DNA from: Octopus sinensis
Lineage: Eukaryota
DNA: 64,000 nt
NCBI RefSeq assembly: GCF_006345805.1
Contig: NC_043002.1
Span: 10,230,001-10,294,000 of the forward strand
Direction: 5' to 3'
This document shows positions 20,688 through 63,410 of this stretch, piece by piece. The position numbers and the translations under genes are program-made. Position 1 is the first letter of the stretch. Every line of letters starts with the position of its first letter. The notes below the pieces were generated by a model. The model was not told the DNA's origin and did not search any database. It saw only the letters and a list, made by a program, of their open reading frames with translations.

Positions 20688-20732
<45 letters not shown>

Positions 20733-21073
20733 GTACAACTTCTCGAAGCGTGCTTATAGTGATAAATTATATGGTTATGGACGTTGTGTCTAGTTTCAGC
20801 ATAGTTGGCATTAGAATTTTTTTCTTTTGCCCTTGTTGATAAGCTGTTTATAAATTTAACCTTTAAAGGTATTTTTTAATATGCTGGCCATTGATAAAAA
20901 AGTTTTTCGGAAAATTTTATCCTACATTAGATGCATATATATATACGAAGCAATTTCCCCAGCTCCCCTTCAGGGTTGGCGAAAGCAATGTGGTGGACAA
21001 CGAAAAACCTGGCTGATGACAGCTACCACACAGCGATCTATTGAGTCTCCTCTCGCGAACGACACGATCCGAA

Positions 21074-23832: not shown

Positions 23833-24743
23833 TGGAGAGTTATATTATGTTTTGTTGTATTTTATAGATTCATTTACTGTATTTATGGTCGGCTCGCTTA
23901 TGCTGTACTCTTAGTTCAATCAGATATTATATTTCAATACACTCTGGAGCGATTTACGGTATCGACAAAATAAGCAGCATCTGAATGCTGGGGTCAATGC
24001 GATCAAATAGTCCCCTCTCTAAAAGTTTCTTGAATTGTACGTTTGCAAGAAAAGATTATCATTATTTTTTGCATCGAGAATTCAGTTACTATGTTTTTCA
24101 ATGGCTTTGTTGTACAAAGTTGAAGGTTTTGTATTATTTTCAATAAGTATTCTACTGTGAATTGTAACTTTTGAACCAACAGGTTTACGTGAGTGTGCAG
24201 GTCGACATTAATGCGACACCAACTTTTGACACCAAATGATGTTTTATTAAAGTTAAGATCCTTTCTGTGTTTTTGAGCGGCAAATATGGCTTCCAGGTGA
24301 TGTTGGCATAATTTTATCACGCTGTGTCATGTCAAATCCCTTTCGCAAATATGTCTCCATTGTTAGACTTCAATTTTTGATAATATTGTCATTGGCTAAA
24401 CAAGATTTAATATTAATTATTAAGCAAAGCTGACATTCTGCTCTTTACTCTGTAACATGCGACTGCAAACAAAATATAATACGTGCTTCTATATATCATG
24501 CAAACCCCTAGTATTCCGGGTAGGCCACTGTGACATACATTTACTTCTGTATTTTACGTGTAATAACAGAGTCAATCACTGAAGTATGTGAGACAAAGTA
24601 TATGCGGGAGGCGATCACCAACTTCATATTTGAATGTTAATATTATTTAAATTATTGGCTTTCCGAACGAATTACTTTTTTGACAAATATTAAAGAAATA
24701 TCGAATATAATGAGACATTTTATTTGTGCTTCTTTATTAACAG

Positions 24744-24813
24744 ATGTATACATTTCCGGTAAGTTTGTTCCTCCTCCTAATCAATCCTAAAGTTGTTACC
24801 AATGCTCCACAAG
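24744..24813 (+). CDS. Cys-rich secreted protein, copy 2, coding exon 1: MYTFPVSLFLLLINPKVVTNAPQ+G
   Basis: ttaacag|ATG; 70 nt; donor G|gtaagc; paralogous to 51215-51284. Confidence 0.75.
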
Positions 24814-25540
24814 GTAAGCTTCAACCTTCTTATTTTCATCTGATATACCGCCATTAAAATCCTCCATGTTTTTCTTTTCATGCAGCATGCAACGTAAGCT
24901 TTCGTCATATCCATGGAATATTTCTTGAGTCGGTAAATGTCTTATATAATGAAACCTTTCAAGGAAGAATTGCTATCTTATCGATCTCCATCATCTAAAA
25001 TTCTACGACAGAATTAACAAGTTTAATTAACAAAGAAATTCTTGATTAAACAATAACCTTTGTTCATTTGTGTCATTACCACGTTATAATAAGAAATAGT
25101 TAAAGAAAATTAATGAAAATACGAAGCGAAATACAAAGGAAAATACAATAAAAGTCCTCTCACATGATATTGAAATAGTCGAAAAGTTTAAAGTGAAATA
25201 TGTGTCTACTAAATACTAATTACATCGATATTTAACTGGAAATTAATTATCATTCTATTTTTAGATATCGTTCGCTAATCATCCGGCAATCTTGATGCTC
25301 AAAATCGCATTAGCAACAAAGACAACGAGGGGTCCATATTGACTGCACTGATGGTCTCTGCTTTTGAGCGCTTTCGTCATTCACATGATTACGATACTAA
25401 GACCTAGCAATCATATATTATAATTGAATTAATTCAATTCACGCAGATTTTGTACTAAACCACATTTAAAACAGTGATTCACCTTGTCAAAAATGAAAAT
25501 TACCAGTTTTTAAGCCTTCATAAATGCATTTCCTTTATAG

Positions 25541-25666
25541 GGTGTAGAGGATGTTTCTATGAAGCAAATTGCTTTTGTAGTGGAGAACATACGCGTTTAA
25601 ACCCATCAATGGAAGATTGTAAGGAAATATCATGTCTCAATTCACAATCGAAAGCGATGATAAGCT
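25541..25666 (+). CDS. Cys-rich secreted protein, copy 2, coding exon 2: GCRGCFYEANCFCSGEHTRLNPSMEDCKEISCLNSQSKAMIS
   Basis: tcctttatag acceptor; 126 nt open; T|gtaagt donor; 24/42 aa identical to copy 3 including all six Cys. Confidence 0.8.
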
Positions 25667-26314
25667 GTAAGTAAAAAGTAAAAAGTATTAACTATGATAA
25701 ACTTTCTTCATATTTTTCTTATCAGACGGGTTAACCGTTGGTTTTGTTTTTCTGTGTGAATAGTTACACATTTAATGAATAATGCCAGTTTTTTAACTTC
25801 GTCCTTGTAGCATTTTCTACATTTATTAGTGAAAATATATTAATTTTGTTTCGTAAACTTTTCTAGAACATAGATTATTAATTATGGATGTAAGTGGATT
25901 AAGTTACTATGAGGAGAACAGATCTAGAAAGTGTTCCACAAATTGTTTTTCAGAATTTGAAACTGTGCAAAGCGTCTGATGGAGTGATGGTGATACCGAA
26001 ATATTCATACTGCAATAATTCGTTTAGTTTAATATAGGTGAATGCTACAAATGTAAAACCTAGTATGGTGGACATCATCTGATGAGTGGAAACGGTTAAC
26101 ATTTGATTAAAGTTTAGGTTTGAAATGGAATACTTTTCCATGAGAATAAATCTCAAATTTATTTATTTAAGACCAGGATACCTAACTATCTTTTTATTTT
26201 ACTTCAATAATATTAAGCTATTTAACTAAAGAATCTCTTCAGGTTAAGCAGCCATTTTGCAATAAGAGTCAGCGTAGCACGAGTAATTTGATTCAGCACA
26301 TCAGTACTTTGACA

Positions 26315-26900
26315 GCAGCGCCATCTCAGCCAAACAGTTATTCTGTGTCGATGAAGGGAAATAACCCTGAAACAATGCGGTCCACAGATAGTGCTTTGTA
26401 CTGGTTGGGGGTGCTAATCCTCCCTGTTCGAAAATATAAGGACACAGCTAATGTGTCGTATAGCCAGCTGGAGCCGATGTATCCCAGGGCTAAACAACAG
26501 TAGCATTCGTCCCAAAGGGGACTCTTACATTAGGTTGGCAAATAATCTGCTACTAAATGTCTCACGTTGAGAGATCTAGGAACAAAAATGTTTCTCTCTA
26601 TTATATTGGTGATTGCATGTCACTTAGAAAATTTATATATATTTTCGAACAAGGATTTCGCACCGCCATCTCAGCCAAATAGTTATTCTGTGCCGATGAA
26701 GGGAAATAACCCTGAAATCGTACGGTCCACAGGTGCTAAACTCCCCCTGTCCGAAAATATAAGGACACAGATAGTGTGTCGTATAGCCAAATGGAGACGA
26801 TGTCTCCTGGAACTAAACAACCGGAACCGCCACATTAGGTTGGCAAATAATCTTTGTTTTAAATCACTGCTACTGAATATCTCTCGTTGATAGATTTAGG
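26315..26900 (+). repeat. Tandem duplication of about 340 bp inserted in intron 2 of copy 2
   Basis: cgccatctcagccaaa(c/t)agttattctgtg at about 26320 and 26664; absent at the equivalent site in copy 3 (near 53450). Confidence 0.8.
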
Positions 26901-27036
26901 AACAATAATGTTTTCACTTTACACGCACACACACACACACATGTATATATATATATATATATGTTTATAATATACATATATACATATATATATGTATGTA
27001 TGAATATGGAAAATTATAAAATTACATTTTCTTCAG

Positions 27037-27167
27037 ATTGTAAAGACACTCAAGGACAATGTTTGACCAGAGGCGTCTTTGCGTTTGACTTCTACGACTC
27101 TCGTTGTCGAACACTTTACTGCAAAGTACCACCGAGCGAAGGAAACAAGTGGCACAATATGATCAGA
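27037..27167 (+). pseudogene. Cys-rich secreted protein, copy 2, exon 3 with a 1-nt deletion near its 3' end (YCKDTQGQCLTRGVFAFDFYDSRCRTLYCKVPPSEGNKWH, then frameshift); pseudogene or sequencing error
   Basis: ttttcttcag acceptor and A|gtatgt donor as in copy 3, but 131 nt instead of 132; one extra base in cacaatatgat would restore Y-D-Q and phase 1. Confidence 0.65.
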
Positions 27168-27241
27168 GTATGTTGGTTCGACAATGTTATTCTCTCTCAC
27201 TTTTTTCTCGATTCATCTCTGCCTAATATATGTTTATGCTT

Positions 27242-33970: not shown

Positions 33971-34070
33971 NNNNNNNNNNNNNNNNNNNNNNNNNNNNNN
34001 NNNNNNNNNNNNNNNNNNNNNNNNNNNNNNNNNNNNNNNNNNNNNNNNNNNNNNNNNNNNNNNNNNNNNN
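33971..34070. other. Assembly gap (100 N, real size unknown)
   Basis: Run of N. Confidence 0.99.
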
Positions 34071-34570: not shown

Positions 34571-34613
<43 letters not shown>

Positions 34614-34619
34614 CTCTTC

Positions 34620-34995
34620 TACTATTTTACTTGTTTCAGTCATTGACTGCGGCCATGCTGGAGCACCGCCTTTAATCGAGCAACTCGACCCCGGGACTTA
34701 TTCTTTTGTAAGCCCAGTACTTATTCTATCGGTTTCTTTTGCCGAACCGCTAAGTAACGGGGACATAAACACACCAGCATCGGTTGTCAAGCAATGCTAG
34801 GGGGACAAACACAGACACACAAACACACATACATATATATATATACATATATACGACGGGCTTCTTTCAGTTTCCGTCTACCAAATCCACTCACAAGGCT
34901 TTGGTTGGCCCGAGGCTATAGTAGAAGACACTTGCCCAAGGTGCAACGCAGTGGGACTGAACCCAGAACCATGTGGTTGGTAAACAAGCTACTTA
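34620..34995 (-). mobile_element. SINE family C
   Basis: Reverse complement of family C. Confidence 0.85.
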
Positions 34996-35032
34996 CCGCA
35001 CAGCCACTCATGTGCCTATATATATATATCTA

Positions 35033-35081
<49 letters not shown>

Positions 35082-38916: not shown

Positions 38917-38964
<48 letters not shown>

Positions 38965-38966
<2 letters not shown>

Positions 38967-39180
38967 CTTTACTGCCCACAAGGGGCTAAACATAGAGGGG
39001 ACAAACAAGGACAGACAAAGGTATTAAGTTGATTACATCAACCCCAGTGAGTAACTGGTACTTAATTTATCGACCCCGAAAGGATGAAAGGCAAAGTCGA
39101 CCTCGGCGGAATTTGAACTCAGAACGTAACGACAGACGAAATACCGCTAAGCATTTCGCCCAGCGCGCTAACGCTTCTGC
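38965..39180 (-). mobile_element. SINE family A
   Basis: Reverse complement of the family A body. Confidence 0.8.
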
Positions 39181-39409
39181 ACACACACATACACGCGCGC
39201 ACACACACAAATATATATAGATGAAGGCATGGCTTTGTGATCAGAAGATTATTTCCCAACCACATGGTTCTGGGTTCAGACACCCTGTGTGGCACCATGG
39301 GTAAGTATATTCTTCTATAGCCTCGGGTCAATCATAGCCTTGTGAGTGGATTTGGTAGACGGAAACTGAAAGAAGCGCCTCGTGTTATATGTATATATAT
39401 ATTTAGTGA

Positions 39410-40439: not shown

Positions 40440-40830
40440 TGAGTTGCCGAGCTGACAGAAATATTAGCACGCCGAGCGAAATGCTTACCGGTATTTCGTC
40501 TGTCGGTACGTTCTGAGTTCAAATTCCACCGAGGTCGACTTTGCCTTTCATCCTTTCGGGGTCGATAAATTAAGTTTCAGTTACGCACTGGGGTCGATAT
40601 AATCGACTTAATCCGTTTGTCTGTCCTTGTTTGTCCCCTCTATGTTTAGCCCCTTGTGGATAATAAATAAACAGGTATTTCGTCTGTATTTACGTCTGTA
40701 TTTACGTTCTAAGATCAAATTCCGATGAGGTCAACTTTGACACTTATCCTTTCAGGGTCGATAAATTAAGAACCCGTTGCGTACTGGGGTTGATCTAATC
40801 GAATGGCTCCCTCGCCAAAATTTTCGGATC
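40440..40830 (+). mobile_element. SINE family A, diverged dimer
   Basis: Family A head and body plus a degenerate second unit. Confidence 0.8.
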
Positions 40831-41997: not shown

Positions 41998-43167
41998 ATA
42001 TATATATATTTAAACTTAAATTGAAATTGCACCATCCCAATCTTCGTTTACGAAATAAATGATACAGGAAAGAGTTAATAAATAAGTTTAGAGAACGAAA
42101 CTACAAAATATTTCACTAGATAAGTGTACAAATAAATTTTAGAATATGTTAAATAATTTCACGAAGTTCAAATCAACTAAATCAAAAACAAATGCATTAA
42201 AAATGAATTATATAATGAAATTACATTTTTCATAGGTATTTTAGAAACAGTTAAGAAGTAACTTATACACCGGTATTCTAAATCATTACTCTATTATTAA
42301 AGAAAGTAAAGGAATGAGATATGAAAGGAAAAGAAGAATGAACAATAGCATGCACAGTGAGAATTTGTTCACCAATAAACTCAGCTCAAAAGTTACCATT
42401 CAAGAAATTAAAATGAAGTGTATAACAATAACAAGTACGACGAAGTTTGAAATAAAATAAAACATGAAAAAGAAAATCGAAAATGAAACTGGTAAGTTTG
42501 AAGGCCTTTTCTTTGAAGTTTTTCAATGAGAGTCGCCATTTGCCTATCTAGTTTTGAAATGAGTTATTATGATTTATACATACATGTCCTTTACATATAT
42601 GTTCTTTATTCAACCGGATTTTGTTTTTCATAGAAATAAAACTTTACCCGTTGAGGAAAGACGACATATTTGCCCGTTTTGCTTGTTACCTTATTGTGAT
42701 AATGAATATACAAAAGCAAGTTCAGACCAGGTTATATTAAACATGCTGTCACATGATTTCTTTCCATCTCCAGATATATGTGGAAAGACCAGTAGAGAAT
42801 TTACTGTTTAGCGAAAATTCGTGCGAGCAATATCATGACTTGAATTAATAAGCAAACACTTCTATTTTTGTTAAAATATAGAACATTGAAAACCACAACT
42901 TAATGCTTTATTGGCACTATGTAATAATGAAATGGAAAAACCACCACATAAAGTGGGAAGCGTTAGTAAAGTTATGTATATATAAGGCGAGGATATTGTT
43001 TCATGCGTTTCGTTTTATGATTACAAATGCATCTGATGATGCTTTTTATGTTTTCATTTTTCGAATATCATAATTAATTATAGTTTTCTAATTCTCCAAT
43101 AATGTTTCGACGTTTGAATAATACCTTCTGATAACTTTCTGGGTTACATTCACCTATTTACGGGCAA

Positions 43168-43199
<32 letters not shown>

Positions 43200-43210
<11 letters not shown>

Positions 43211-43483
43211 ATATTCTCTTTTATTCTTTTTTTTTATTTCAGTCATTTGACTACGGCTTTGCTGCAGCACCGCCTTTAGTCGAGCAAATCGGCCTCAGCA
43301 TTCATTCTTTGTTTGCCTAGTACTTATTCTTGCGGTTCTTTAGCCGAACCGCTAAGTTACGGGGGCGTAAACAAATTAGCATCGGTTGTCAAGCAATGTT
43401 GGGGGGACAAACATATACACACACACGTACACACATACGTATATGTACACACACACGTACACACATACGTATATGTACACACA

Positions 43484-43546
<63 letters not shown>

Positions 43547-43822
43547 ATATATATATATATATTCTCTTTTATTCTTTTTTTTTATTTCAGTCATTTGACT
43601 ACGGCTTTGCTGCAGCACCGCCTTTAGTCGAGCAAATCGGCCTCAGCATTCATTCTTTGTTTGCCTAGTACTTATTCTTGCGGTTCTTTAGCCGAACCGC
43701 TAAGTTACGGGGGCGTAAACAAATTAGCATCGGTTGTCAAGCAATGTTGGGGGGACAAACATATACACACACACGTACACACATACGTATATGTACACAC
43801 ACACGTACACACATACGTATAT

Positions 43823-43894
<72 letters not shown>

Positions 43895-44055
43895 GTATAT
43901 ATTTATGACGGGCTTCTTTCAGTTTCCGTTATGCTATATACACTCACAAGGCTTTAGTTGGCCCGAGGCTGTAGTAGAAGATACTTGCCCAAGGTGTCAC
44001 ACGGTGGGTCTGAATCCGGACCCATGTGGTTGGTAAGCAAGCTACTTACCACATA
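43200..44055 (-). mobile_element. SINE family C with its 3' half duplicated in tandem (348-bp period)
   Basis: ORF-track translations at 43313 and 43661 start identically, 348 bp apart. Confidence 0.82.
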
Positions 44056-44089
44056 CCCACTCGTAAATGCATTATACAAGTAGGTTGAA

Positions 44090-46900
44090 CAATCCAAATG
44101 CAGTTCAATGCTGCAAAATTTCAAATGCACCACAGGCTGCATATCCAGGACCCAGCAGCCAGACACACAGTGGGACATTGCCAAAATAGCGACAAAGTAT
44201 ATACATTTGGCAGGATGGATACTACGGTCCTTCAGGACAAGAGACTAAGATCTCAAGTTGGCCCTGTGGAACCCCTTTGTTTTCGGCTCCTTGACTATTG
44301 TTCTCAGCTGTGGTAAATGCATAGTGTCAAAGTAACACCGGAGCTTAAAGCGATCCAACGCTGCTATGCTATAGTAAACCGTTTGTACCACAGGTGAAGT
44401 ACAGGCAGAAGCTGACAAAACTACGGCTCTACTACTTTGGGGGAAATTCCTCAAGTGCTTGTACCTGACTTCGGCTTCAGACAATGTAAAAGTTCCCGTA
44501 CGTGATGGCATTATGTTGTACCAAGGCATTGTCCGCTCCATCTAATACTTGGGTTTTGAGGGCCCATCACTTTTCAAAATCTGTAAAACAACATACGTAG
44601 CAACAAATAATATGAATTTGTGTTTATTGTAATTTCTTGAATATATAACTTAACTTAGATAAGTCTCGCTCAAAGAGTGACTCCGGCCATGTTTAATTTA
44701 ATTGCACCACCTGATAGGATCTACTAAGTCATTTTAAAGACAAATGTTGCTGCATGTGGCCCATTCAAGTACGTGGTTGTTGTTGATGTGTCCAGTTAAG
44801 AGTGTCTTATCTGATATCCCTTGAAGAACCTTGTCTACGTTTCGTTTTAGGGTAATGGGATCTTTTTCTCTGATTTGTTTTCTGTTGATGTTCAATAGAG
44901 TAAGGCTTCTTGAGGGGAAGCAATTGTATTGTGATTAATTTATGTTTTATGAGCCTGAAATGTGTAGGGGGCGTATGTCACGTGACATCAGCATTGGACA
45001 AATTCTGAATCTGATGTTAAGGTCGTTTGGGCAATTCCGGTGTTAAATCCTCCAAATTGTGCAAGTGTAGTAACGCTCACGATGACGCTGGGAAGAATAA
45101 AGATACAGAAATCCTGATCAATCATGCCATTTATTTTTTGTGAACACTCTCTGGAGTGACTCAGTTCTCGTACTGCTTTGTTTGTTGTGGAGTAACCACA
45201 TAGTGCAGCAGTATTCTTGGCGTGTCTGTACAAAGGGAAAGCTGACATCTTGCTCGCTGAACCGCAAATTTCAGAGAGCAAGATGTATTGATAATTTTCT
45301 GGAGCTCAGAGTCATCTGCAAATATCCTTAATTTGCTGGGTTTCATGAATCCCAAATAGTTGCCTGTTGATTCTTGCTGGACTTGAATGGAATCCAACGA
45401 TCACAACATGTCCTTTGTTCACCAGGAAATGATTCAGCGTAGTAGCTTCAAATGGATTCTAATTCTAATATTTGACAATTCTGAAACGAGGATATTGTGG
45501 GCAACTCTGTCTAACGCTTTACTGTAACCAAAATATATGACATCAGAGTTCGAATGTGATCCCAAAGCCTTGAGGACATCTTGGATATGATGTCACTGCT
45601 GTCTTTCCCGGAAGCCAGTTATCCTCGATCTCACCACACTTTCAAACACTTTGATATTATGAGAGGTGAGTGAGATTGGGAAATAGTTTTCTGTGAGAGA
45701 CGTGTTTCCCATTTTGAAAATCGGGACGATAGTTTGCGATAGGAACTTTTCCGGTACATAGCTTGAGTGTAAAAAATTTCTCCAGAGGTTGGTTAGATGG
45801 GTAGCAAGTCGATGTCTACATTCCTTTAGGGACACTAGGGACGAATCTATCAGGTCCTACAGCAGAATAGTGCATGACATCATTTATTGATGCTATGGTG
45901 TCTGTGGGGGTGAAAGTTCGGTCCAAAGTAATATGTTGAGGAGCGGCGAGCTGGTAGAGTCGTCAGTACGCTGGACAAAATGCTTCGCAATATTTCGCCC
46001 GTCGCTACGTTCTGAGTTCAAATTCCGCTGGCGTCGACTTCGCCTTTTAAAGGCGGTGAGTTGGCAGAAACGTTAGCTCGCCGGGCGAAATGCTTAGCGG
46101 TATTTCGTCTGCCGCTACGTTCTGAGTTCAAATTCTGCCGAGGTCGACTTTGCCTTTCATCCTTTCGGGGTCTATTAAATAAGTACCAGTTACGCACTGG
46201 GGTCGATATAATCAACTTAATCCGTTTTTGTGTCCTTGTTTGTCCTCTCTGTGTTTAGCCCCTTGTGGGTAATAAAGGAATAGGTAATATGTTGAGGAAT
46301 GAGCTCGTTCAGAAGCTTTGCGTCAATATCTTGGAGATCGCTAAAGACAGAGAAGTACTTTTTCTGCAGAACATCCGTCGTTTCTTCAGCGTCATGTGGG
46401 AGAATGCTAATTAATAGACCAACTGATGAGAGAACGTTACTATGTCTGTTGGCACATAAGTAAAACACTTTCGGGAACTGTTTCATGTTTTGCTTACCCA
46501 GATTACCACAACAGCTCTTTGATTGTGGATGTAGGTGTACAAGCTGACCTGCAGATGCTGATTTCCCTACTCAGTACTTTTATGCTGCTGTTGGCGATTG
46601 TATTTTAAATGGAGGATTTGTTAATAAAGTCTTTTGATTCACCCGATGAATGTTTTTGTTTCTCTCTTGGCAGCTTATTTCTATAAGTGCTTCAGATTGA
46701 GATTTTCATAGGAATCATTGAGAAAAATGCCTTTTGCTCCTTTATTGTAGTCAATGCGATCTGAACGGGTGATGAATGTTTTTTGTTTTCGCCTCTGTGT
46801 CTATGTGAGTGTAGTTTTAGTGGTTTTCCCTGAGGATAAAAAAAAAGGGATGCAGTGCGTCATTTCAGCAATCTGTGTATGAAATCTTTATTTGTACAAG
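44090..46900. mobile_element. Paralogous copy of the old rearranged LINE at 340-2900
   Basis: ORFs MQFNAAKFQ...RLLDYCSQLW (+), QTIVPIFKMGNTSLTENYFPISLTSHNIKVFE (-) and KLRIFADDSELQ (-). Confidence 0.8.
45943..46283 (+). mobile_element. SINE family A with an extra partial head, 15-bp TSD
   Basis: TSD gtaatatgttgagga at 45928-45942 and 46284-46298. Confidence 0.88.
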
Positions 46901-47290
46901 ATGTATGGTATCTTGTTTGGAATCATGCATTTGCGACTATTGACTAGGAGGGGTTGAAATTATGTTTCCGTGGATGGGAAGCCTGGGTACTTTAGTGAAG
47001 CACTCATTCATAAAACCATGCTTTATCGGATAGAATTACAACCAATATTCATGTAAAATAACTCCCTACAATTTTAAATACATAATACATTGGGTTATAT
47101 GTCCCCTTATAGATTATACGTTCCCTTTTGCTAAATGGGATTTTGTTCCCATTACCAAATGATTTTATATTATTTTCTTAATTTTCCAACATTTTCTGTG
47201 TTATTTGTCTAGTTATGTGTCTGTCATTTATTAATGTAAAACTAACAATGAACGTGTCATTGCAAACCTTAAACCTATTTGTATTACAGC

Positions 47291-47443
47291 TATAAATCAG
47301 AAATTCATGTAAAGAATGTATGTTTACGGTTTCCATATACCACATACGGCAGCTGTATGTTAAAATAACTCAGACTCTGAAAAAGTTTGCAAAACTTGTT
47401 AATTTTATTTTGTATGTTTTCAGCTCTCATTCAGAATTTCCAG
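47291..47443 (+). promoter_or_regulatory. Candidate TATA box and 5' non-coding exon of copy 3 (paralogues 3299-3453 and 21715-21855)
   Basis: TATAAA conserved at 3299, 21715 and 47291; a 35-bp near-invariant block follows; AG|gtaag donor conserved at 3454, 21856 and 47444. No conserved ORF here, and coding exon 1 starts at ag|ATG, which requires an upstream UTR exon. Confidence 0.5.
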
Positions 47444-48850
47444 GTAAGTTACATGCTTAGTAGAAAATTTATAATTGATGTTTTTTTCATTTTGTTTATG
47501 AAATGTGACACAAAGAACTACAACGATCAATCTCTTGATATATAGCGCTAAAAATAACGACAATTCGTTTTGAGATTTTTCTTTACTTTCATCATATCAA
47601 TAATATCAAAATCTAGTTTGCGTGAAATTTTATTCTAAAACATAGGAGAAACGCGACTTTGAAATGGATATTATTGTACTTTAATTTACATGAGCGATTA
47701 ACAAAAATGTCAATGACCAAATTATATTCTATTCGTGGCCATCACGTCATATAATTTCCCTCTTATCTAATGGGATATAGGGAAGTTTTGGTTGAAATTT
47801 CTTGCGGGTCCAGTAAAATATGTAGGCTCCCTACTAAGCATTTTATGTAATCTTTGTTCTTGGTTCCTATCGTAATGTTTGCTAGTTGCGGTTGTACCAT
47901 CAATAATCCTCACACTGAAAATTTCTTTCTTTGAAAATTGTTTTTTGTCAGAATTGTGCGCAATTCCTGCAATTCCTGCATTTCTTTTGTAACATCTCCC
48001 GCCAGAGTTTGAACCAGGGATTTGCGTTTATTAATTTATTTGTTTACTTATTAATATATTTAACTGTACTGAAATGAAACTGGTGGCTATTGGGAACTGT
48101 TGCATGAGACAAAGAACTGTGCATGCACTCTGTCAAAATATGTGTGAATGGGAACGTTCTGTCAAGTTGGTGCTGGTTCGAATCACACTGTCACTATTAT
48201 ATTTTGCTTTTATACAATATTATTGGTATTTTCGAAGTCGTTGTACCTACGTAGTAACGCAAAAAAGCTGTTAAAATCAAATTAAGTTTATTTGATGAAA
48301 TTTCAGAATTTTTGTCGCGCAACTACGCCTTAGTAGCTGGCACATACATCATGTTGCTACGTATATAATACTTTTCATTTGAATTTATCTTTATGCATAT
48401 GGATGTATACATATCTATATGGCCGTTCTTATATATAACTATAAATGCATCAGTCTATCTGTATATATGTCTACATATGTGTATGAATATATTCCTATGT
48501 GTAATTGCGATTGTAAAGTTGTGCTGATAACTGTTTATACGGTTATCCGTGGGATGTTCATGTATCAATGTTTATTGTGTTAAAATAATGAAAAAATATA
48601 TTATTTGCTCTCTTGTCTTTACACCTAAAACATTTCCCCCAGTATACGATCAACTGATAACTGATGCTAAGATGCCTCAAAACTCAGGATATTTATCTAT
48701 TACGATGAACACAATAGCATTTATAGGTTTTAAGTATGAAGGTGAAACCTTTGAAAAATTTGAGGGCTGATTAAGTTTATGCTTGTATTTGAGCCCACAC
48801 TACCACCATTGGCCTTGTGCCGACAGCAGAAAGGTTTATTATAACATGGA

Positions 48851-49233
48851 TGGAAGCACTCCGTCGGTTACGACGATGAGGGTTCCGGTTGATCCGATCA
48901 ACGGAACAGCCTGCTCGTGAAATTAACGTGTAAGTGGCTGAGCACTCCACAGACACGTGTACCCTTAACGTAGTTCTCGGGGATATTCAGCGTGACACAG
49001 AGAGTGACAAGGCCAGCCCTTTTGAAATACAGGTACAACAGAAACAGGAAGTAAGAGTGAGAGAAAGTTGTGGTGAAAGAGTACAGCAGGGATCGCCACC
49101 ACCCCCTGCCGGAGCCTCGCGGAGCTTTAGGTGTTTTCGCTCAATAAACACTCACAACGCCCGGTCTGGGAATCGAAACCGCGATCCTACGACCGCGAGT
49201 CCGCTGCCCTAACCACTGGGCCATTGCGCCTCC
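48851..49233 (-). mobile_element. SINE family B, 11-bp TSD
   Basis: TSD ttattataaca at 48836-48846 and 49236-49246. Confidence 0.88.
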
Positions 49234-49810
49234 ACTTATTATAACAATCTGTCAGATGGCTTGCTGGCAGCAGCGTTAGCACAACGTATAAGATGCTTAG
49301 CGGCATTTCAGCCGTCTTTACTTTCTGAGTTCATTTTCAACTTTGCCTTTCATCCATTTGAGACTGATAAACAAGGACCACTTGAGCACTGGGGGGAAAT
49401 AATCGACTCGCTGCAGCCCCAAAATTTCTAGCCTTGTGCCTATTCTTATAGCTAACGTCAGCGCAATAAAACTAAATATGTATGCTTGTGTTACACTTTG
49501 TTTTCTTGTTTCTTATAGACACTCCCTACTGTTAATTTTCTACTATAATTCGTGTTTTCAATTTCTTTGTCTTTAAATGTATTTCTATTTCTTGCCAGGA
49601 GAGTTACATTATATTTTGTTGTATTTTATGGATTCATTTATTGTATTTATGGTCGGTTCGCTTGTGATGTACTCTTAGTTCAGCGAGATATTAATATTTC
49701 ATTACCTACTGGACCGAATTACGCTATCCATAGAATAAGTAACATGTGAACGTTGGGAACGATATGATCAAATAGCCCACTTTCTAAAAGTTTCTTAAAT
49801 TATACGTATA

Positions 49811-50458
49811 GGATCTTTACCTTTTGACCGACAGATTTAAAAAATATTTTTTTGTAACTAAACACATTCAAACTTCGGACACTGGTAGAATGTGTCTTAT
49901 AAAATATCTTTTACTCTTAGCATTTTTGAGAAAAACTTATGTTTACGACGTTATTTCAAGTTAAAGTTCTTCTATTTCGGTAATTTCAACCAATCAATGT
50001 CGTGTAATCAGCTGAATAAAATTACTGCTGTTGTTTGTCAACAAGAACTTCCGGCGGTGTATATTTTCTTTGTCACTGTTATTTATGACAACCCTAAACC
50101 TAAAACCCTAACCCTAACCCTAACTCTAAAACCCTAACCCTAAAACCTTAATGCTAAAACCAATACAAACGCATGAACGATGTCATAAATAACAGTGACA
50201 AACGAAAAATACACCGCCGTTAGTTGTTAACAAACAACGGCAGTAATTTTATTCAGCTGAATACAAGTCATTGATTGGTTGAAATTACCGGAATACGACA
50301 ACTTTAACGTGAAATAACTTCGTAAATATAAGTCTTTCTCAAAAATGCTAAGTGTAAAAGATGTTTTTATATGACACATTCTACCAGTGTCCGAAGTTTG
50401 AAAGTGTTTAGTTACAAAAAATTATGTTTTAAATCTGTCGGTCAAAAGGTAAAGATCC
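49811..50458. mobile_element. MITE with about 280-bp imperfect TIRs, TA target duplication and an internal (CCCTAA)-like array
   Basis: ta|ggatctttaccttttgaccgacagattt ... aaatctgtcggtcaaaaggtaaagatcc|ta; telomere-like repeats at about 50093-50150; absent at the equivalent sites in copies 1 and 2. Confidence 0.88.
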
Positions 50459-51214
50459 TATGTATAAAAGAAAGGATTATCAGTATTTTTTGGTATTGAT
50501 GTTTTAGTTACTATTCTTTCCAATGGCTTGTAACAGGCTGTAATTTTGATATAAAGTCGAAGGTTTCGTATTATTTCCAATATGTATTTTACTGTGAATT
50601 ATTACTTTTGAACCGATAGGCTTTCGCGTGTGAGTAGGTCGCCATTAATGCGACGAAAATTTTGATACCAAATAATAAATGTTTAATTAAAGTCAAGAGC
50701 CTTTGTGTGTTTCTGAATGGCTAACATATGACTTCCAGGTGATGTTGATTTAGTTAAAGCACGCTGTTTCATGTCAGATCCCTTTCGCAAATATGTCTCC
50801 AATGTTCCATTTCAATTTTGGGAATATTGTCACTGGCTATACAGGATTTCATATTAATTATTAAGCAAAGTTGACATTCTGTTCTTTATTCTGGAACACG
50901 CGGCTCTAAACAAAGTAGTTTACGTGTTCCTATACATCACAGCCAGCCTTATATCTTCTCTCTACATCAGCATAATGCCCCAGTATTCCGGGTAGGTCAC
51001 CGCGACATACATTTAATTTTTATAATTTACACGTAAGAATAGAGTCGACCATTGAAGAATGAGAGACAAAATATATGCGAGAGGTGATCACCAATCTCAT
51101 ATTTGAATGTTAATATTGTTTAAATATTTGACTTTTCGAAGGAGTTACTTTAGCAACAATATTATGGAAATACCGAATATAATGAGATATTTTATTTGTA
51201 TTCTTTACTAACAG

Positions 51215-51284
51215 ATGTATATATTTCCGGTAACTTTGTTCTCACTTGTAATCCTTCCTAACGCTGTTAAGATTAATCCATTTG
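51215..51284 (+). CDS. Cys-rich secreted protein, copy 3, coding exon 1 (signal peptide): MYIFPVTLFSLVILPNAVKINPF+G
   Basis: Branch point and acceptor ctaacag directly before ATG (51215); 70-nt open frame ending at phase-1 donor G|gtaagc (51285); hydrophobic core; same length, frame and splice sites as copy 2 (24744-24813). Confidence 0.82.
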
Positions 51285-52072
51285 GTAAGCTTCAATATTC
51301 TTAAGTCTTCATCTTTGATAATGAACATGATGAGTGTATAAGATCCTGATATACTCCCATTTAAAGCCTCCATGTCTTCTTTCCATGCAGCATGCAAAGT
51401 AATTTTACGTCATGTCCGTGAAATTTCTTGAGTACAAGTCGGTAAACGTCTCATAACATCGAACATTTGAAGGAAAAGTTTTAACTTATTGAACCCCATC
51501 ATGTAAATTTTTAAAATAAAATCGAGAAGCGTAATTAATATAAAAAATTCTTAATTAAAACAATAATCTTCATTCTTTTGTGTCATTACCACGTTTTGAT
51601 AAGAAATATTTGAAAGAAAATGAATGAAATTGAAAGGAAAATACAATAAAAATTCACTCACATCATATTGATACAGTCGAAAAATTTAAAGTGAAATATT
51701 TATCTACTAAATATTAATTTCATCGATATTTCACTGCAAATTAATTATCCCGCATTTCTAGATGTCGTTGGCTAATCATCCGGCGCCCTGAATGCTCAAA
51801 GCCGCATCAGTTTCTTATCGGTCTCTTGATTATCTACAAAGACAGCAAGGGGTCAATATTGACTACACTGCTGGCATCTGCTCATCAGCGCTTTCGTCAT
51901 TCACACGATTACGACGTTTGCTAAGACCTAACAATCAAATATCATAATTAAAGGAATTTGATTCACGCAGTATTCATACTAAACCACATAAACTAAACCA
52001 CGGATCCCCCTCGTCAAACAGCGAAATAACATGTCTTTCCTTTAGCCTTCATAAATGTATTTTCTTTTACAG

Positions 52073-52198
52073 GGTGTAACGGATGTAACGAAGAAGTAAC
52101 TTGCTTTTGTAGTGGAGAAACTAAGCAATTAGAGGCATCAATGGAACATTGTGAGGAAATATCATGTCTCAACTCATTAACGAACGTTGTGAATAGCT
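52073..52198 (+). CDS. Cys-rich secreted protein, copy 3, coding exon 2 (module 1): GCNGCNEEVTCFCSGETKQLEASMEHCEEISCLNSLTNVVNS
   Basis: Acceptor ttttcttttacag; 126 nt (multiple of 3), phase 1-1; donor T|gtaagt; six Cys all conserved in copy 2 (25541-25666). Confidence 0.88.
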
Positions 52199-52329
52199 GT
52201 AAGTAAAAAGTAGTAACAAAGATTAAACTTTCTTCATATTTTTCTTATCAGACGAGTTAACTGTTGGTTTTGTTTTTCTGTATGAATACTTACACATTTA
52301 ATGTATAATGATATTAAGTTACCAGGGAA

Positions 52330-52932
52330 GGCGTCGAGCTGGCAGAACCGTTAGCACGCCGGGCGAAATGCTTCGCGGTATTTCGTCTGCCGTTACGTTC
52401 TGAGTTCAAATTCCGCTGAGGTCGACTTTGCCATTCATCCTTTCGGGGTCGTTAAATTAAGTACCAGTTACGCACTGGGGTTGATATAATTGACTTAATA
52501 CCTATGTCTGTCCCTGTTTGTCCACTCTATGTTTTAGCCCCTTGTGGGTAATAAGGAAATAGGTATTTCGTCTGCCGTTACGTTCTGAGTTCAAATTCCG
52601 CTGAGGTCGACTTTGCCATTCATCCTTTCGGGGTCGTTAAATTAAGTACCAGTTACGCACTGGGGTTGATATAATTGACTTAATACCTATGTCTGTCCTT
52701 GTTTGTCCACTCTATGTTTAGCCCCTTGTGGGTAATAAGGAAATAGGTATTTCGTCTGCCGTTACGTTCTGAGTTCAAATTCCGCTGAGGTCGACTTTGC
52801 CATTCATCCTTTCGGGGTCGATAAATTAAGTACCAGTTATGCACTGAGGTCGATATAATGGACTTAATCCGTCTGTCTGTCCTTGTTTGTCTCCTCTGTG
52901 TTTAGTCCCTTGTGGGTAGTAAAGAAATAGCT
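52330..52932 (+). mobile_element. SINE family A, tandem trimer in intron 2 of copy 3
   Basis: Three body units of about 190 bp; imperfect TSD tattaa(g/t)ttaccag; empty site near 25785. Confidence 0.88.
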
Positions 52933-53559
52933 ATTAATTTACCAGTTTTTTAGCTTCGTCCTTGTAGCATTTTCTACATTTATTAGTGTAAATATATTAA
53001 TTTTGTTTCGTAAACTTTTCTAGTACATAGATTATTAATTATGGATGTAAGTGGATTAAGTTACTATGAGGAGAACAGATCTAGAAAGTGTTCCACAAAT
53101 TGTTTTTCAGAATTCATAACTGTGCAAAGCGTCTGATGGAATGATGGTTGTTTAGAAACAGTCATACTGTATTAATATATTCAAGTAAAAAAAAGGTTAA
53201 AGCTAAAGATGCAAAATAGATTAAGGTAGACTTTGTCCCATGAGGGGAAAATGTTAACATTTAATCAAAATTTAAGTTTGAAATAGATTACTATACCATG
53301 ATAATAAACCTCAAGTTTTATTATTACTTTCATGCCAGGACACCTAACTATTTTTTAAAAAACTTTATTAAGATTAAGGCTATTTAATCAATGAATCTCT
53401 CAAAGCCAAGCAGCTATTTTGCAATAAGAGTTAGCATAGCACCAGTACTTTGGGTATACGGTTATAATGGCATAGGAAAGTCAGCAACCTGCAGGAGACC
53501 TCGAGGTTGATCAAAAACGAGATGATTACATAATAACTATTGTCTCAGTTGGTTACGCA

Positions 53560-54520
53560 TTGGAATCCAGATGGAGAATGTAATGATACCTTTGTACTCT
53601 ATGGAGAAGGTGTCAGCAGGTTTGTGATTAACAGATTAAATATATTTGCTACACCTGGATCAACTAGATAGGTCAGAATTTCTCGCGACGTGTCGGCTCC
53701 CCTCGCCACAGCATTCGCTCCGTTCCCCTCGTGCTCTTGCCATTCTCCTCCACGTTGGTCCAAACATTTTTCGTAAATCTTCTTCCTACGTGTTTGGAAG
53801 TCTTCCGAGTGGTCTGTTCCTTTCGCCTGGTTACCACTTGGCAAGCGCACGGGTCCACCGATCGTCTGTAAATCTTGCAACATATCCGGCCTTTTGTAGC
53901 TTTCAGCGGTGGAATTCTGTGACAACATTCTTCACTCCAGTTTTATGTCTGATCTCTTCGGTCCGATATTTCAACGTCTCCCTGCACTCTAAGCAGATGT
54001 TTTCCTCCTCTCTTCGTCAAGACCCAAGTCTCGCATGCGTATAGCGTTGCTGGCAAGACTGTGCTGTTGAAGAGGTTGGCACGAGTTGCCCTGTCTAGGA
54101 TCACCTTCAGCACATGCTTCAACGTGTCGAGTGATTACCATCATGTTCTTACCCTTCCCGAGATCTCATTCTCCATCTCACACATCATAGTCACTTCTTG
54201 AACGTAATACACATAACTGCCCACCTCTTCTATCTCATCGCCTTCGGCTGTTAGACGACCGGCCGTATTACTTGGTGTTCGTAGACTTGATCTTCAGGTG
54301 ACCCCTGAACCCCTTGCATGGTCTGTAGCGGATCGTTGCTCTTCACTATCAGATCTATGTCTTCAGCGACCCTGAGATGGGTGAACGGGCTCTCCGCTTA
54401 TCCTTATACCTCTGTTCAAGTGGATGTCCCGTATGGCTATTTCCAGACACGCCTTGAAAAGCTTAGGACAGATAGTATCTCCTTGCTTGACGCCCTTCCC
54501 ACCAGGAACATTCACTGTTT
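53560..54520 (-). mobile_element. Decayed RTE-clade LINE RT fragment inside intron 2 of copy 3
   Basis: Minus strand reads GDTICPKLFKACLE and GEPFTHLRVAEDIDLIVKSNDPLQTM (RTE RT motifs QGD.ISPKLF and LTHLRFADD); absent from the copy 2 intron. Confidence 0.75.
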
Positions 54521-55167
54521 ATTTACCTCATTCTATTTAATTACATACTTAAAACTTCCTGTATCAACATGACTGTTCTGCTTACGATTCTTTTTACCCA
54601 AATATCCATCCAACTATGTATTTTCTCCGCTCACAACTCTTGGAAGGTTTAGCCATTTACACGTCATGGAAACCAGGAAAACCGTGCCTATGAGTCATAT
54701 GATTTCCGACAGTAAAATTCAGGAGAGATGGGATTGATGATGATGACGATAATATTGACAGACATAGGAACGACGGAATCCTCAATGCAAAGATTTCGTC
54801 GAAATGCTTCCATGAAAGTCAACGGGACAAAAAAGGCAAAGAAGCCCTCTTTGTGGTTTTAAACCAGAATAAAGGTTACGACTGCAACCGACGTAAGCCA
54901 CAGTAAGATTCGAACATGGGACACAATAGGCAGAAGTACCATAATGTACTCGGCAACAAGTATGGCGCATTTCTTAGTATTTCATTTATCGACCGCAGAA
55001 GGATCAAAGACTGCTTGATTGGTATCTTTTGTGGTAGATACAATGTCTTCGTGTCACGTGTCTCATGTTTAGTCACTTAAATTTTGTAATCCTTTTTTAT
55101 GCGTGTGGAATTTACGTAGTGTAATACTTACTGTTTGCCATGTCTCTTACATAGCACATGATATAAT

Positions 55168-55592
55168 AGATCTTTTCAGTTTGAACGGCAGTTTTTAACA
55201 TAATTTCTAGGTAACTAAAAAAATTTTAACTTCGTATACTGATAGAATGTGTTTATAAAACATCTTTTTCTCTTTGCTTTATTGAGAAAATTCTATAGTT
55301 TGTAAGATATTTGTTGTGTTTTTTTCTTCAATTTCTGCAATTTCAACCAATCAATGACGTCTATTGAGGTAAAAAACATTCTGTGCCGTATGAATATGTC
55401 CCTCGTTTAAGAAACAGATTGGGTTTATTTACCTTTGTGAAGAAAAAAAGATACCCTTCCCCCCACTCCTAACCCTAATTCTAACTATAAAACAGATTGA
55501 AATGCAATAGATCGATACTATAGTCATAATTATGGGTGACAATTTCATATGACACCGCTAGAAAAAACTGCCGTTCAAACCGAAAAGATTCG
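55168..55592. mobile_element. Related MITE-like element with about 30-bp TIRs and a cctaaccctaa core
   Basis: gatcttttcagtttgaacggcagttttt ... aaaaactgccgttcaaaccgaaaagatt; shares caaccaatca and ccctaa motifs with the 49811 element. Confidence 0.7.
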
Positions 55593-56175
55593 ATATAACT
55601 ATGTGTCACATTTTCTATGTAACACTTTACACACACACACACACGCACACATACACACACACATATACATATACATAAGAGGTTCTTTTAGACGACTTTC
55701 ATTTGTATATATGAAAAACATGACTTCACAAATACAATTGCACAACATTTTTTGAATATCTGACGAAGCTATAAGGCGATACACTACCAACCAACTATTA
55801 GTGAACTGTATCCCACGGCAAAAACACCTTTAATCTGATGAAGAACATTCCACTAATACTCGTCACCTTCGCAATATATACATACATATATACATACATA
55901 TATATATATATATATATAATTATTATTTGAGGGAATAAATCCAAACTTACAGGGAAAAAATTCAATTTAGAAATACTAAATCAAATTTCACACAATATAA
56001 TATATATGTAAAAATTAGAAAAAAACACCTTTTATCAATTCAAAATGAACAATTAAATTACACCATCTAGAAAATTACATATTATAGGTTTTAAAATATA
56101 TTCTTTTCTAGATGGTATAGGAATATCCTTCAATGATGAATTCCAAAAGAGTGGTTCTATTTTACCTGTATATTG

Positions 56176-56242
<67 letters not shown>

Positions 56243-56253
56243 ATTTCTTTCAG

Positions 56254-56385
56254 ATTGTAAAGACAATCAAGGACAATGTTTGACCGAAGGCTACTTTGTG
56301 CTTGGCTCCTATGACTTTCGTTGCCGAACACTTTACTGCCGAGTACCGACAAGCCAATTCAAAAACTTGACGCGCTATGATCAGA
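56254..56385 (+). CDS. Cys-rich secreted protein, copy 3, coding exon 3 (module 2): YCKDNQGQCLTEGYFVLGSYDFRCRTLYCRVPTSQFKNLTRYDQ
   Basis: Acceptor tttctttcag; 132 nt, phase 1-1; donor A|gtatgt; four Cys conserved in copy 2 (27037-27167). Confidence 0.88.
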
Positions 56386-56665
56386 GTATGTTGGTTCGAC
56401 AATGTTATTCTCTCACATATTTTTCTCGCTTCATCTCCATTTATGTTTCCTACTTTTTTCTACAATATCATTTCAACGCTTCAAAAACAAACTTATCTTT
56501 GTTTACACATGATGGAATCTCTATAAAATCTAGCGTTTATGGATAACTTTACAACTTCTAATAGTGCAGAATTCGCCGGTCGGCAGTTTGGCTTAAAGGG
56601 TAGAACACCCCAACCTGATACTGGAAGGATGTGACTGCTCCTTTTGGCTGGTTGCCGGCAACTTT

Positions 56666-56704
<39 letters not shown>

Positions 56705-56711
56705 ATATATA

Positions 56712-57074
56712 TAGGCGCAGGAGTGGCTGTGTGGTAAGTAGCTTGCTAACCAACCACATGGTTCCGAGTTTAGTCCCACTGCGTGGCATCTTGTGCAAGT
56801 GTCTTCTGCTATAGCCCCGGGCTGACCAATGCCTTGTGAGTGGATTTGGTAGACGGAAACTGAAAGAAGACCGTCGTATATATGTATATATATGTGTGTG
56901 TGTGTCTGTGTTTGTCCCCCTAGCATTGCTTGACAACCGATGCTGGTGTGTTTACGTCCCCGTCACTTAGAATAAGTACTGGGCTTACAAAGAATAAGTC
57001 CCGGGGTCGATTTGCTCGACTAAAGGCGGTGCTCCAGCATGGCCGCAGTCAAATGACTGAAACAAGTAAAAGAG

Positions 57075-57075
<1 letters not shown>
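56712..57075 (+). mobile_element. SINE family C in intron 3 of copy 3
   Basis: Head and tail present, with an internal deletion. Confidence 0.85.
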
Positions 57076-57107
<32 letters not shown>

Positions 57108-57413
57108 CTGAATTCAATTCGTCTCTGGTCGAAAGACGCCTGTTGTTATGTCCTGTTATTATTATTATTGTTTTTTGTATTTATATTCGTATTATATATA
57201 TATATACATGAATGCTTGTATGTATGGTTATATATATGACTGTGTGTTTGTGTTTGCGTATGAATGTGTAGCAAATTTAACTATCTCTTATAATCCTGGC
57301 ATACAACTCATGTTCAGAAAATTTTAAGACTCTTATGGTCGCTATTATTTTCTCAAAAATCAAACAAATCTTCAAAGAAATTTCATATTAACAAATAATG
57401 TCTTATTTTACAG

Positions 57414-57481
57414 TTTGCAGGCTGGATCGTAAGTTTGAAAATGGGAAATATCTTACCTATAGGAAACGATTGGATTGCTAA
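57414..57481 (+). CDS. Cys-rich secreted protein, copy 3, terminal coding exon: ICRLDRKFENGKYLTYRKRLDC*
   Basis: Acceptor tcttattttacag; phase 1; TAA at 57479-57481; AATAAA at 57539-57544. The paralogue at 11985-12052 has the same length, stop position and downstream AATAAA. Joined CDS is 70+126+132+68 = 396 nt = 131 aa plus stop. Confidence 0.82.
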
Positions 57482-57905
57482 AAGAATATTCCATGTTCAG
57501 CACTCTTTAATCTCTAGAGTATTAACAGAATATATATCAATAAAAATATAAGGAGGTACGGAAATCAGCGTTATATATCGAGTAGAATTATTGACTTACC
57601 TTTTCCTGGTATTATACATGTAAAACCTTCTGTTGAAGTGTGAAATACCGCTCTATTTGTTTATACTGATTGCACCAATCAGCATTGATAGACCACTATC
57701 TAGACATTAACATATTAGCACACACACCCACTTACTCACATTCCTGTACATATACATGTATCTATGTATATTTTCTGTGTCCCTTTCTATAGAAGAGCGT
57801 AGGCTCGAAACGTAAAAGACTTTTTCTATTCCTGAGCGTTATAATAATACATCTGTTTGTTTTGTACACCACCTGTCTTCGTCTTTTGCTTTTTTCGTAA
57901 ACACT

Positions 57906-61924: not shown

Positions 61925-62540
61925 AGGCGCAGGAGTGGCTGTGAGGTAAGTAGCTTGCTTACCGACCACATGGTTCCGAGTTCGTTCCCACTGCGTGGCA
62001 CCTTGGGCAAGTGTCTTCGACTATAGCCTTGGGCCGACCAAAGTCTTGCGTGTGGATTTGGTAGACGGAAACAGAAAGAAGCCCATCGGATATATGTATA
62101 TATATATATAGTTAATCCAAACAAGAAAACACAAAAAAACACAACAACGAGAGGACGTTGAACAAATATAGTATTATTGGACGCTCAGGAAAGAAGGGAA
62201 GAAGGAGGGTTTAACGTTTCGAGCGGAGCTCTTCGTCGGAAACATAGGAGAAGGAAAGATCCAGAGAAGGGAAGTCAGAGGAAAAAAAATCGCCAACGGT
62301 ACACATGAGGTCACATATATGTATGTGTGTGTGTATGTTTGTGTGTCTGTGTTTGTCCCCCCAACATCGCTTGACAACAGATGCTGGTGTATGTACGTAC
62401 CCGTAACCTAGCAGTTCGGCAAAAGAGAGACCGATAGAATAAGCACTAGGCTTACAATGAATAAGTCCTGGGATCGATTTGTTCGACTAAAGGCGTCGCT
62501 CCAGCATGGCCGCAGTCAAATGACTGAAACAAATAAAAGA
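61925..62540 (+). mobile_element. SINE family C interrupted at its internal microsatellite by a Penelope pLTR-like insert (about 62110-62320)
   Basis: 5' half 61925-62095, 3' half 62340-62540; the insert carries a hammerhead-like motif on the minus strand. Confidence 0.75.
62209..62243 (-). ncRNA. Degenerate minimal hammerhead-like motif in a Penelope pLTR-like insert (related motifs at 57785-57820 +, 13066-13102 -, 33088-33128 -)
   Basis: Minus strand reads GUUU-CCGACGA-A-GAGC-UCC-GCUC-GAAAC-GUU-AAAC. Each related copy carries core substitutions (CUAUAGA, CUGUAGA with CAAA, CUGACAA). Confidence 0.45.
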
Positions 62541-62744: not shown

Positions 62745-63410
62745 TGGATCCTAAGAACATTCAGAACCAGAGATAAGGAAACCATGATGGTCCTCTGGCG
62801 GACATTCGTCCTCAGTCGCCTGGATTACTGCTCACAGCTATGGTCACCCACCAGTGTAAAATTAACAGCAGACCTTGAAGCAATCCAGAGAAGATTCACA
62901 AAGAAGATCGTCTCTTTGCAACAGCTCAGCTACTGGGAAAGGTTGAAACAGCTAAGACTCTACTCCCTGAAGAGAAGACGGGAGAGGTATGCAGTAATAT
63001 ATGTCTGGAAAATCCTGGAAGGAACTGTGCCAAATTTTGGCATTGTAAGCTACACCAATGCTAGAACGGGACGACACTGCATAGTGCCAAAGATCCCAGC
63101 AATGCCATTACGCTTCAGGACCAGCTTCTGCAACAGCCTAGGTTTCAAGGGCCATAGCTTTTTAATATTCTCCCAAAGAGTCTGAGGAAATTGCACAAAG
63201 TAGATTTAGCGGTTTTAAAATCAAAGCTGGATATCTTCCTGTCAAGAGTCCCAGATGAACCTACCTCACGGCAAGAGGTGCAAATGAGAGTAGCTGTATC
63301 AAACGCCATTCTTCACCAAGTGCCACATATTAGACGAGGTTCGTCGTAATAACAGTGTAGCACAACACGGCGTTGCATCAGCATGGCCGCAGCTCTGAAC
63401 TGAAACTAGA
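62745..63410 (+). mobile_element. CR1/L2-group LINE 3' fragment, same family as 13196-14346, frameshifted
   Basis: ORF 62784-63185 has LWRTFVLSRLDYCSQLWSP...RRRERYAVIYVWKILEG; ends cagcatggccgcagctctgaactgaaac plus an A-run. Confidence 0.9.

Follow-up and report, generated by a model that had tools for sequence, protein, structure and literature searches.

A candidate gene for a twelve-cysteine protein of a family seen so far only in Octopus, in a partly decayed tandem array of Octopus sinensis

We analyzed a 64,000-nt stretch of the Octopus sinensis genome (NCBI RefSeq assembly GCF_006345805.1, contig NC_043002.1, positions 10,230,001 to 10,294,000 of the forward strand; hereafter the window, in whose own numbering positions are given) and found that the last of three related tandem units carries what is probably a functional protein-coding gene, here termed copy C, with four coding exons (E1 to E4). 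The predicted product is a protein of 131 amino acids with 12 cysteines, belonging to a family that is, as far as has been seen, restricted to Octopus, and the gene is, judged by its colinear position, the ortholog of LOC128248166 in Octopus bimaculoides. Since this ortholog had already been predicted, although it is uncharacterized, the finding is mainly one of a missed annotation.

An earlier note on this DNA, written from the letters alone, had proposed a four-exon gene with GT-AG introns, all in phase 1, that encodes 131 residues including 12 cysteines and is followed by AATAAA. This model was confirmed by exhaustive scripted testing of GT/AG pairs near the proposed splice sites, in which a single combination yielded the proposed protein exactly. 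The introns joining E1 through E4 all run from GT to AG and are all in phase 1, with the donors GTAAGC, GTAAGT, and GTATGT and acceptors that have good pyrimidine tracts (Table 1). The cysteines are located at residues 25, 28, 34, 36, 50, 55, 67, 74, 89, 94, 111, and 131, forming the framework C-x2-C-x5-C-x-C-x13-C-x4-C-x11-C-x6-C-x14-C-x4-C-x16-C-x19-C, which fits 12 cysteines into about 107 residues with no adjacent pair and ends in ...RKRLDC. Each of the three exons that contribute cysteines does so in even number, with six in E2, four in E3, and two in E4. We take copy C to be a real and intact gene, with a model far beyond chance, because the open reading frame (ORF), the splice sites, and all 12 cysteines are intact in two other species and because the protein has database matches at E = 2.5e-42 (LOC128248166) and 1.3e-25.

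Positions 34583-63941 aligned colinearly, at 97-98% identity, with 123.44-123.48 Mb of Octopus vulgaris chromosome OX597819.1, and the locus likewise matched O. bimaculoides CM046606.1 (106.63-106.66 Mb) in colinear order, with an identity of about 85%. The four exons are intact in both species, which bears out the earlier claim that this is a genuine multi-exon gene. In O. vulgaris they have identical boundaries and differ from those in the window by three synonymous and three nonsynonymous changes, with all three amino acid differences falling within E2 and an identical E1 protein sequence. In O. bimaculoides the boundaries and phases are again the same, and the protein is 65% identical and retains 12 of 12 cysteines.

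Existing gene models describe these orthologous loci differently. For LOC128248166 isoform X3 (XP_052824995.1, "uncharacterized"), RefSeq joins the same four coding exons as in copy C, but places the start of translation upstream, 11 codons before E1 and in a separate exon. In isoforms X1 and X2, an additional donor within exon 3 (AAG/GTGACA) is used, exon 4 and the 3′ untranslated region (UTR) are read in another frame, and the products are 148-159 residues long; the segments concerned lie at 14627-14758 and 19961-20098 in the O. bimaculoides locus sequence. The window has AACTTGACG in place of the AAG/GTGACA donor, and therefore an isoform of the X1/X2 type cannot form here. At the O. vulgaris locus on OX597819.1, in the region corresponding to 42338-57481 of the window, the model CAI9724926.1 ("hypothetical predicted protein," 97 amino acids) contains E2 and E4, but these follow on two exons farther upstream, in which the model starts, and E1 and E3 are passed over despite being intact, leaving a protein with only eight cysteines and no signal peptide; either the model reflects a genuine alternative transcript or the annotation is mistaken. 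The exact 131-residue protein was absent from a collection of 15 billion proteins, and the homolog search returned no further gene model containing the exons of copy C, such that the gene seems to be unannotated in the source assembly. The earlier description of the gene as hidden and without a name thus holds for this assembly, but not for O. bimaculoides, where the ortholog is in RefSeq, nor entirely for O. vulgaris, where the locus bears another model.

The 5′ end of the transcript appears to be more complex than the four exons originally proposed. These are correct as coding exons, but at least one further 5′ exon lies upstream. Exon -1 is used in isoforms X1 and X3 of O. bimaculoides and as an internal exon in the O. 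vulgaris model, and would prepend MFSALIQNFQ to the copy C protein, giving two candidate N-termini, MYIF... and MFSALIQNFQMYIF.... Because an upstream exon is spliced onto E1 in the annotated orthologs, the copy C gene would comprise five exons or more, with the family-conserved reading frame carried by four. The E1 ATG directly follows the acceptor in copy C, in the neighboring copy B, and at both paralogous loci examined. It appears to be a likelier translation start than the ATG of exon -1, since the E1 methionine is invariant across 11 aligned family members and the upstream extensions have no sequence in common. A paralogous copy of the second upstream exon (exon -2, beginning MNNSMHSEN..., which may or may not belong to the 12-cysteine gene) was found in unit B at 19830-19919, with 57% amino acid identity, and the duplicated unit therefore included exon -2.

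To delimit the family, a complete HMMER search (cut-off E<=1e-3) covered 1.84 billion representative proteins, with a profile built from the O. bimaculoides ortholog, the O. vulgaris model, and the exon pieces of the window. This recovered nine clusters, each from O. bimaculoides, O. vulgaris, or O. sinensis and without exception labeled uncharacterized, in agreement with the earlier claim of a lineage-specific family, and a second, word-indexed homolog search with the family alignment brought no additional members. The family would thus be lineage-restricted, having been seen so far only in Octopus. Its members are 126-155 residues long and share a hydrophobic N-terminus, the 12-cysteine framework, with which all 12 cysteines of copy C align, and the CKDxxGxC motif. 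Ten of the 12 cysteines are invariant in 11 aligned sequences, while the remaining two, encoded by exon 4, are retained in every sequence that has this exon. Four phase-1 coding exons, with the ATG straight after an acceptor, also characterize both paralogous loci examined, namely that of an O. vulgaris paralog about 100 Mb distant on the same chromosome and LOC128248169. The other members, comprising LOC106869804, LOC106872966, LOC128248169, LOC128248170, LOC128248178, LOC128248081, O. sinensis LOC118763715, and O. vulgaris CAI9723911.1, are 25-44% identical to copy C and form a second subfamily with CxGCYYxxxCxC...GVYxNxCVT; all are uncharacterized. In O. bimaculoides a stretch of about 600 kb contains four members, and the apparently intact relatives of copy C in that species are about 110-600 kb away from it. 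We found no paper mentioning the LOC or UniProt identifiers of the family or its peptide motifs, and general papers on octopus venom and on novel genes do not mention it, so far as we searched; the family is undescribed, even though an ortholog of copy C is already in the databases.

Rates of change differed across the gene. Between the window and O. bimaculoides, identity was 78.6% in E2, 82.6% in E3, and 78.5% in E4, in comparison with 90% in the putative signal exon E1. Noncoding sequence was 87-91% identical in intron 1, the 5′ flank, the downstream region, and the beginning of intron 3, whose final 230 nt reached 80%. The excess of coding over noncoding divergence was significant (Fisher p = 5e-4), as was that of the nonsynonymous rate (dN) over the intron rate (p = 0.006). 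For the same species pair, dN was 0.20 and the synonymous rate (dS) 0.23, with a ratio (omega) of 0.89, and omega was 1.26 over the first 100 codons between copy C and copy B. Among the mature residues 41 of 107 differed from O. bimaculoides, while none of the 12 cysteines had changed (P = 0.002), a pattern which suggests a fixed cysteine scaffold with fast-changing loops, not uniform decay. Positive selection on copy C is suggested by these values, but not proven, given the small number of sequences. With copy B as the outgroup, a relative-rate check recovered no asymmetry between the two copy C lineages (22 versus 24 unique changes).

The 3′ UTR behaved in the opposite manner to the adjoining coding part, being 97% identical to that of O. 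bimaculoides (75 of 77 positions) as against about 78-79%. The near-identical block (57479-57590) comprises the 3′ UTR and approximately 45 nt past the poly(A) signal, and is partly recognizable in the paralog 100 Mb away. It is possible that the block is a regulatory site. RNA folding of the conserved 3′ UTR returned no stable fold (z = 0.17).

Self-alignment placed copy C in the third of three tandem units that are offset by about 18-27 kb. The earlier note had described a tandem cluster at intervals of about 20-25 kb, with paralogs at 24744-27167 and 11985-12052. Both are present where it placed them, but they do not appear to be working paralogs: only copy C is apparently intact, neither copy A nor copy B is demonstrably so, and both seem to have decayed. 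Exon 3 of copy B is 131 nt long, not 132 as in copy C, because a single nucleotide has been deleted 26 nt upstream of the donor, which shifts the frame; the deletion lies in an A-rich stretch, where long-read assemblies err, and the death of copy B is to be read with this caveat. Per-exon family hidden Markov models (HMMs) on six frames and sensitive blastn did not recover exon 4 of copy B, although a 100-N assembly gap between units B and C (33971-34070) limits what can be concluded from its absence. The same searches did not recover exons 1 to 3 of copy A. The homology of copy A to the other units breaks off 118 nt short of the expected start of exon 1, and the relic of its exon 4 has lost the last cysteine. 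Copy B and the two copy C orthologs are about equidistant, and the duplication separating B and C is therefore at least as old as the split between O. vulgaris and O. bimaculoides.

The predicted product begins with a hydrophobic segment (Kyte-Doolittle mean of about 2 over the first ~15 residues), as do those of all family members; farther along it has no hydrophobic segment, and its cysteines are even in number. On these three grounds, E1 would encode a putative signal peptide and the product is probably secreted. The mature protein would be about 107-114 residues long, of 12.5-13 kDa and near-neutral isoelectric point; it may fold in the endoplasmic reticulum around six disulfides and, once secreted, bind an extracellular target with the variable loops that separate the fixed cysteines. 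Birth-and-death duplication and diversifying selection together may have shaped the family, a mode of evolution shared by venom, reproductive, and immune proteins. Exon skipping could also yield 12-cysteine and eight-cysteine products from one gene, as it would stay in frame, with all introns in phase 1 and even cysteine numbers (six, four, and two) in the exons. Of these two forms, the O. vulgaris annotation has the eight-cysteine one, without exon 3.

Several points weigh against this interpretation of copy C. Its expression, its real start codon, and its secretion are all things that we infer from the sequence. The proposal of secretion, already made in the earlier note, agrees with the family-wide hydrophobic N-terminus, but the residues at -3 and -1 of the likely cleavage sites are atypical, and by our reading of the von Heijne rule poor. 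In O. vulgaris the model has two upstream exons and omits E1 and E3, and the four-exon mRNA may therefore not predominate in all tissues or species. An omega near 0.9 is, taken alone, also compatible with relaxed constraint, and dS (0.23) also exceeds the intron rate; the contrast between exons and introns is thus no proof of positive selection. AlphaFold2 models of the O. bimaculoides ortholog, computed from 9-row and 13-row alignments, were beta-rich but reached predicted local distance difference test (pLDDT) scores of just 38 and 41.

A dying or dead gene, or a noncoding RNA locus, with no functional 131-residue protein would be in keeping with the overall omega, the decay of both neighboring copies, the use of other exons in the O. 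vulgaris model, and the missing annotation of the protein in the source assembly; we nevertheless consider it improbable, as the ORF, six splice sites, stop codon, and 12 cysteines are intact in three species at a dS of about 0.23, the same cysteine framework is found in paralogs that are only 25-30% identical, and RefSeq modeled the four-exon product in O. bimaculoides. Still more remote, to the point of being scarcely credible, is an origin of the ORF from a transposable element or from a chance assembly of ORF fragments. Although the introns of copy C are full of fragments of short and long interspersed nuclear elements (SINEs and LINEs), six-frame profile searches of the window found the exons at copies C and B only, as unique sequence, orthologous loci are found in colinear position in two other genomes, and Pfam detected no transposable-element domain in 10 family members.

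Accepting that copy C is likely a functional gene, there remains the question of what its product resembles. UniRef labels the paralog A0A0L8H3R2 as "UPAR/Ly6 domain-containing protein," a label that could not be reproduced. Ly6/uPAR proteins (LU-domain, three-finger) have 8-10 cysteines in about 70-90 residues, ending in CCxxxxCN. As the product of copy C is predicted to be, they are small, secreted, disulfide-rich, and beta-rich, and a CxxC at the mature N-terminus and the beta-rich, low-confidence models would suit a very divergent member. Yet this affiliation is very doubtful: cysteine number and spacing differ, copy C lacks the CCxxxxCN end, and neither copy C nor any of nine relatives (0 of 10) matched a Pfam family at E<=10, the LU-domain model included. 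Searches of PDB sequences with single members and with the family profile returned chance hits only or none, with no chain of the Ly6/uPAR kind at E<=10; Foldseek found no match in PDB at E<=0.001, although the input model was too poor for this result to count. An internal duplication of the E2 and E3 modules was not significant by hhalign. It is conceivable, though we would not favor it, that the 12-cysteine family is a new disulfide-rich fold invented within octopods, serving as a rapidly diversifying extracellular ligand (in venom, mating or egg-sperm signaling, or defense), and it could also be modular, with 12-cysteine and eight-cysteine forms arising by exon skipping. One such role, as a venom or salivary toxin of the posterior salivary gland, would account for a conserved signal exon and UTR beside hypervariable mature exons, for tandem birth-and-death evolution, and for a family limited to octopuses. 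In cone-snail venom-peptide superfamilies and similar toxins, too, the signal exon, introns, and UTR are conserved, the mature exons evolve faster around fixed cysteines, and turnover proceeds by tandem duplication and pseudogenes. The resemblance to these is in the mode of working only, as copy C has no sequence relationship to them and no propeptide, and would encode a much larger mature protein with six disulfides. Octopod venom and venom-gland families have been reported to arise and expand by local duplication, in a preprint that does not mention the 12-cysteine family (bioRxiv 10.64898/2026.02.02.703354). Reproductive and immune proteins share the same evolutionary signature, however, our literature searches with the LOC identifiers and peptide motifs gave no link to expression or a proteome, and octopod-age novel genes were most highly expressed in male reproductive tissue in a study in which the family is likewise not mentioned (PMC7656900). 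In a rough division of the possible roles, we would place reproductive or pheromone-like functions level with neural or other ones, each plausible but short of probable, and give somewhat less weight to a salivary or venom role and, equally, to one in skin, mucus, or immunity.

Taking copy C again as a likely functional member of the 12-cysteine family, the immediate consequence is an annotation gap: the protein seems to be absent from the gene set of the source assembly, the O. vulgaris reference model skips the putative signal-peptide exon and exon 3, and the full product is found only in the RefSeq annotation of O. bimaculoides. This orphan family bears marks of molecules that act between organisms or between the sexes, namely a fixed framework of what would be six disulfides, coding exons that change faster than introns, clustered copies with pseudogenes, and no detectable relative by family or structure. 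Such families are common in animal genomes, making the present one useful rather than surprising; a link to venom, mating, or chemosensation would be needed to make it important.

Table 1. Positions of the tandem units, predicted exons, and relics in the window
Feature	Position	Strand	Remarks
Tandem unit A	up to 12342	+	By self-alignment
Tandem unit B	16491-27219	+	Homologous to the other units
Tandem unit C	36027-57771	+	Homologous to units A and B
Exon -2, upstream of copy C	42338-42415	+	Used only by O. vulgaris model CAI9724926.1
Copy C, exon -1	47414-47443	+	ATG and 27 nt up to conserved GTAAGT donor, ATGTTTTCAGCTCTCATTCAGAATTTCCAG/GTAAGT; in frame with E1
Copy C, coding exon 1 (E1)	51215-51284	+	70 nt; acceptor aacag directly before ATG; ends in phase 1
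Copy C, coding exon 2 (E2)	52073-52198	+	126 nt, phase 1-1; 6 Cys (CxxC-x5-CxC-x13-C-x4-C)
Copy C, coding exon 3 (E3)	56254-56385	+	132 nt, phase 1-1; 4 Cys, including CKDxxGxC motif
Copy C, coding exon 4 (E4)	57414-57481	+	68 nt, of which 65 nt coding plus TAA; last 2 Cys
Copy C, 3′ UTR	57482-57544	+	Ends with AATAAA at 57539-57544
Copy B, exon 1	24744-24813	+	70 nt; acceptor and donor same as in copy C
Copy B, exon 2	25541-25666	+	126 nt; 6 Cys kept
Copy B, exon 3	27037-27167	+	131 nt; 4 Cys kept; donor conserved
Copy A, upstream part of duplicated unit	343-5505	+	Homologous to 44064-51097 (unit C) and 21494-24622 (unit B)
Copy A, exon-4 relic	11985-12052	+	Acceptor, 68-nt length, and stop kept; last Cys changed to Tyr

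The window as a whole is AT-rich (GC about 0.33), with many microsatellites and SINE and LINE fragments, and Rfam and tRNA scans across it gave no match. Intron 2 of copy C contains three head-to-tail SINE-like repeats of ~185 bp (52327-52935) that are 91-95% alike, further copies of which were located at 6194-6610, 21071-21488, 23432-23832 (-), 38962-39180 (-), 40448-40802, and 46050-46286; ARAGORN found no tRNA-like head in this repeat. A second SINE-like family, with (TA)n flanks, is present in intron 3 (56700-57105) and at 11238-11641, 34582-35059 (-), 39211-39400, 43183-43444 (-), 43531-43792 (-), and 61925-62105. Antisense within intron 2 is also a decayed fragment (53640-54520, minus strand) which we take to be LINE reverse transcriptase from the motifs GVKQGDTICPKLF and LYACETW. 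Positions 53884-55742 have no counterpart at the O. vulgaris locus, and therefore represent an insertion here or a deletion there. Outside copy C, two mutually similar open ORFs for the C-terminal part of LINE-type reverse transcriptase, of 346 and 133 amino acids, were located at 13278-14318 (-) and 62784-63185 (+), and are probably from fairly young retrotransposon copies. Finally, the long 5′ intron of copy C includes a local tandem duplication of 348 bp (43180-43562 and 43528-43906), rich in (CA)n/(TA)n, with copies that are 98% identical.

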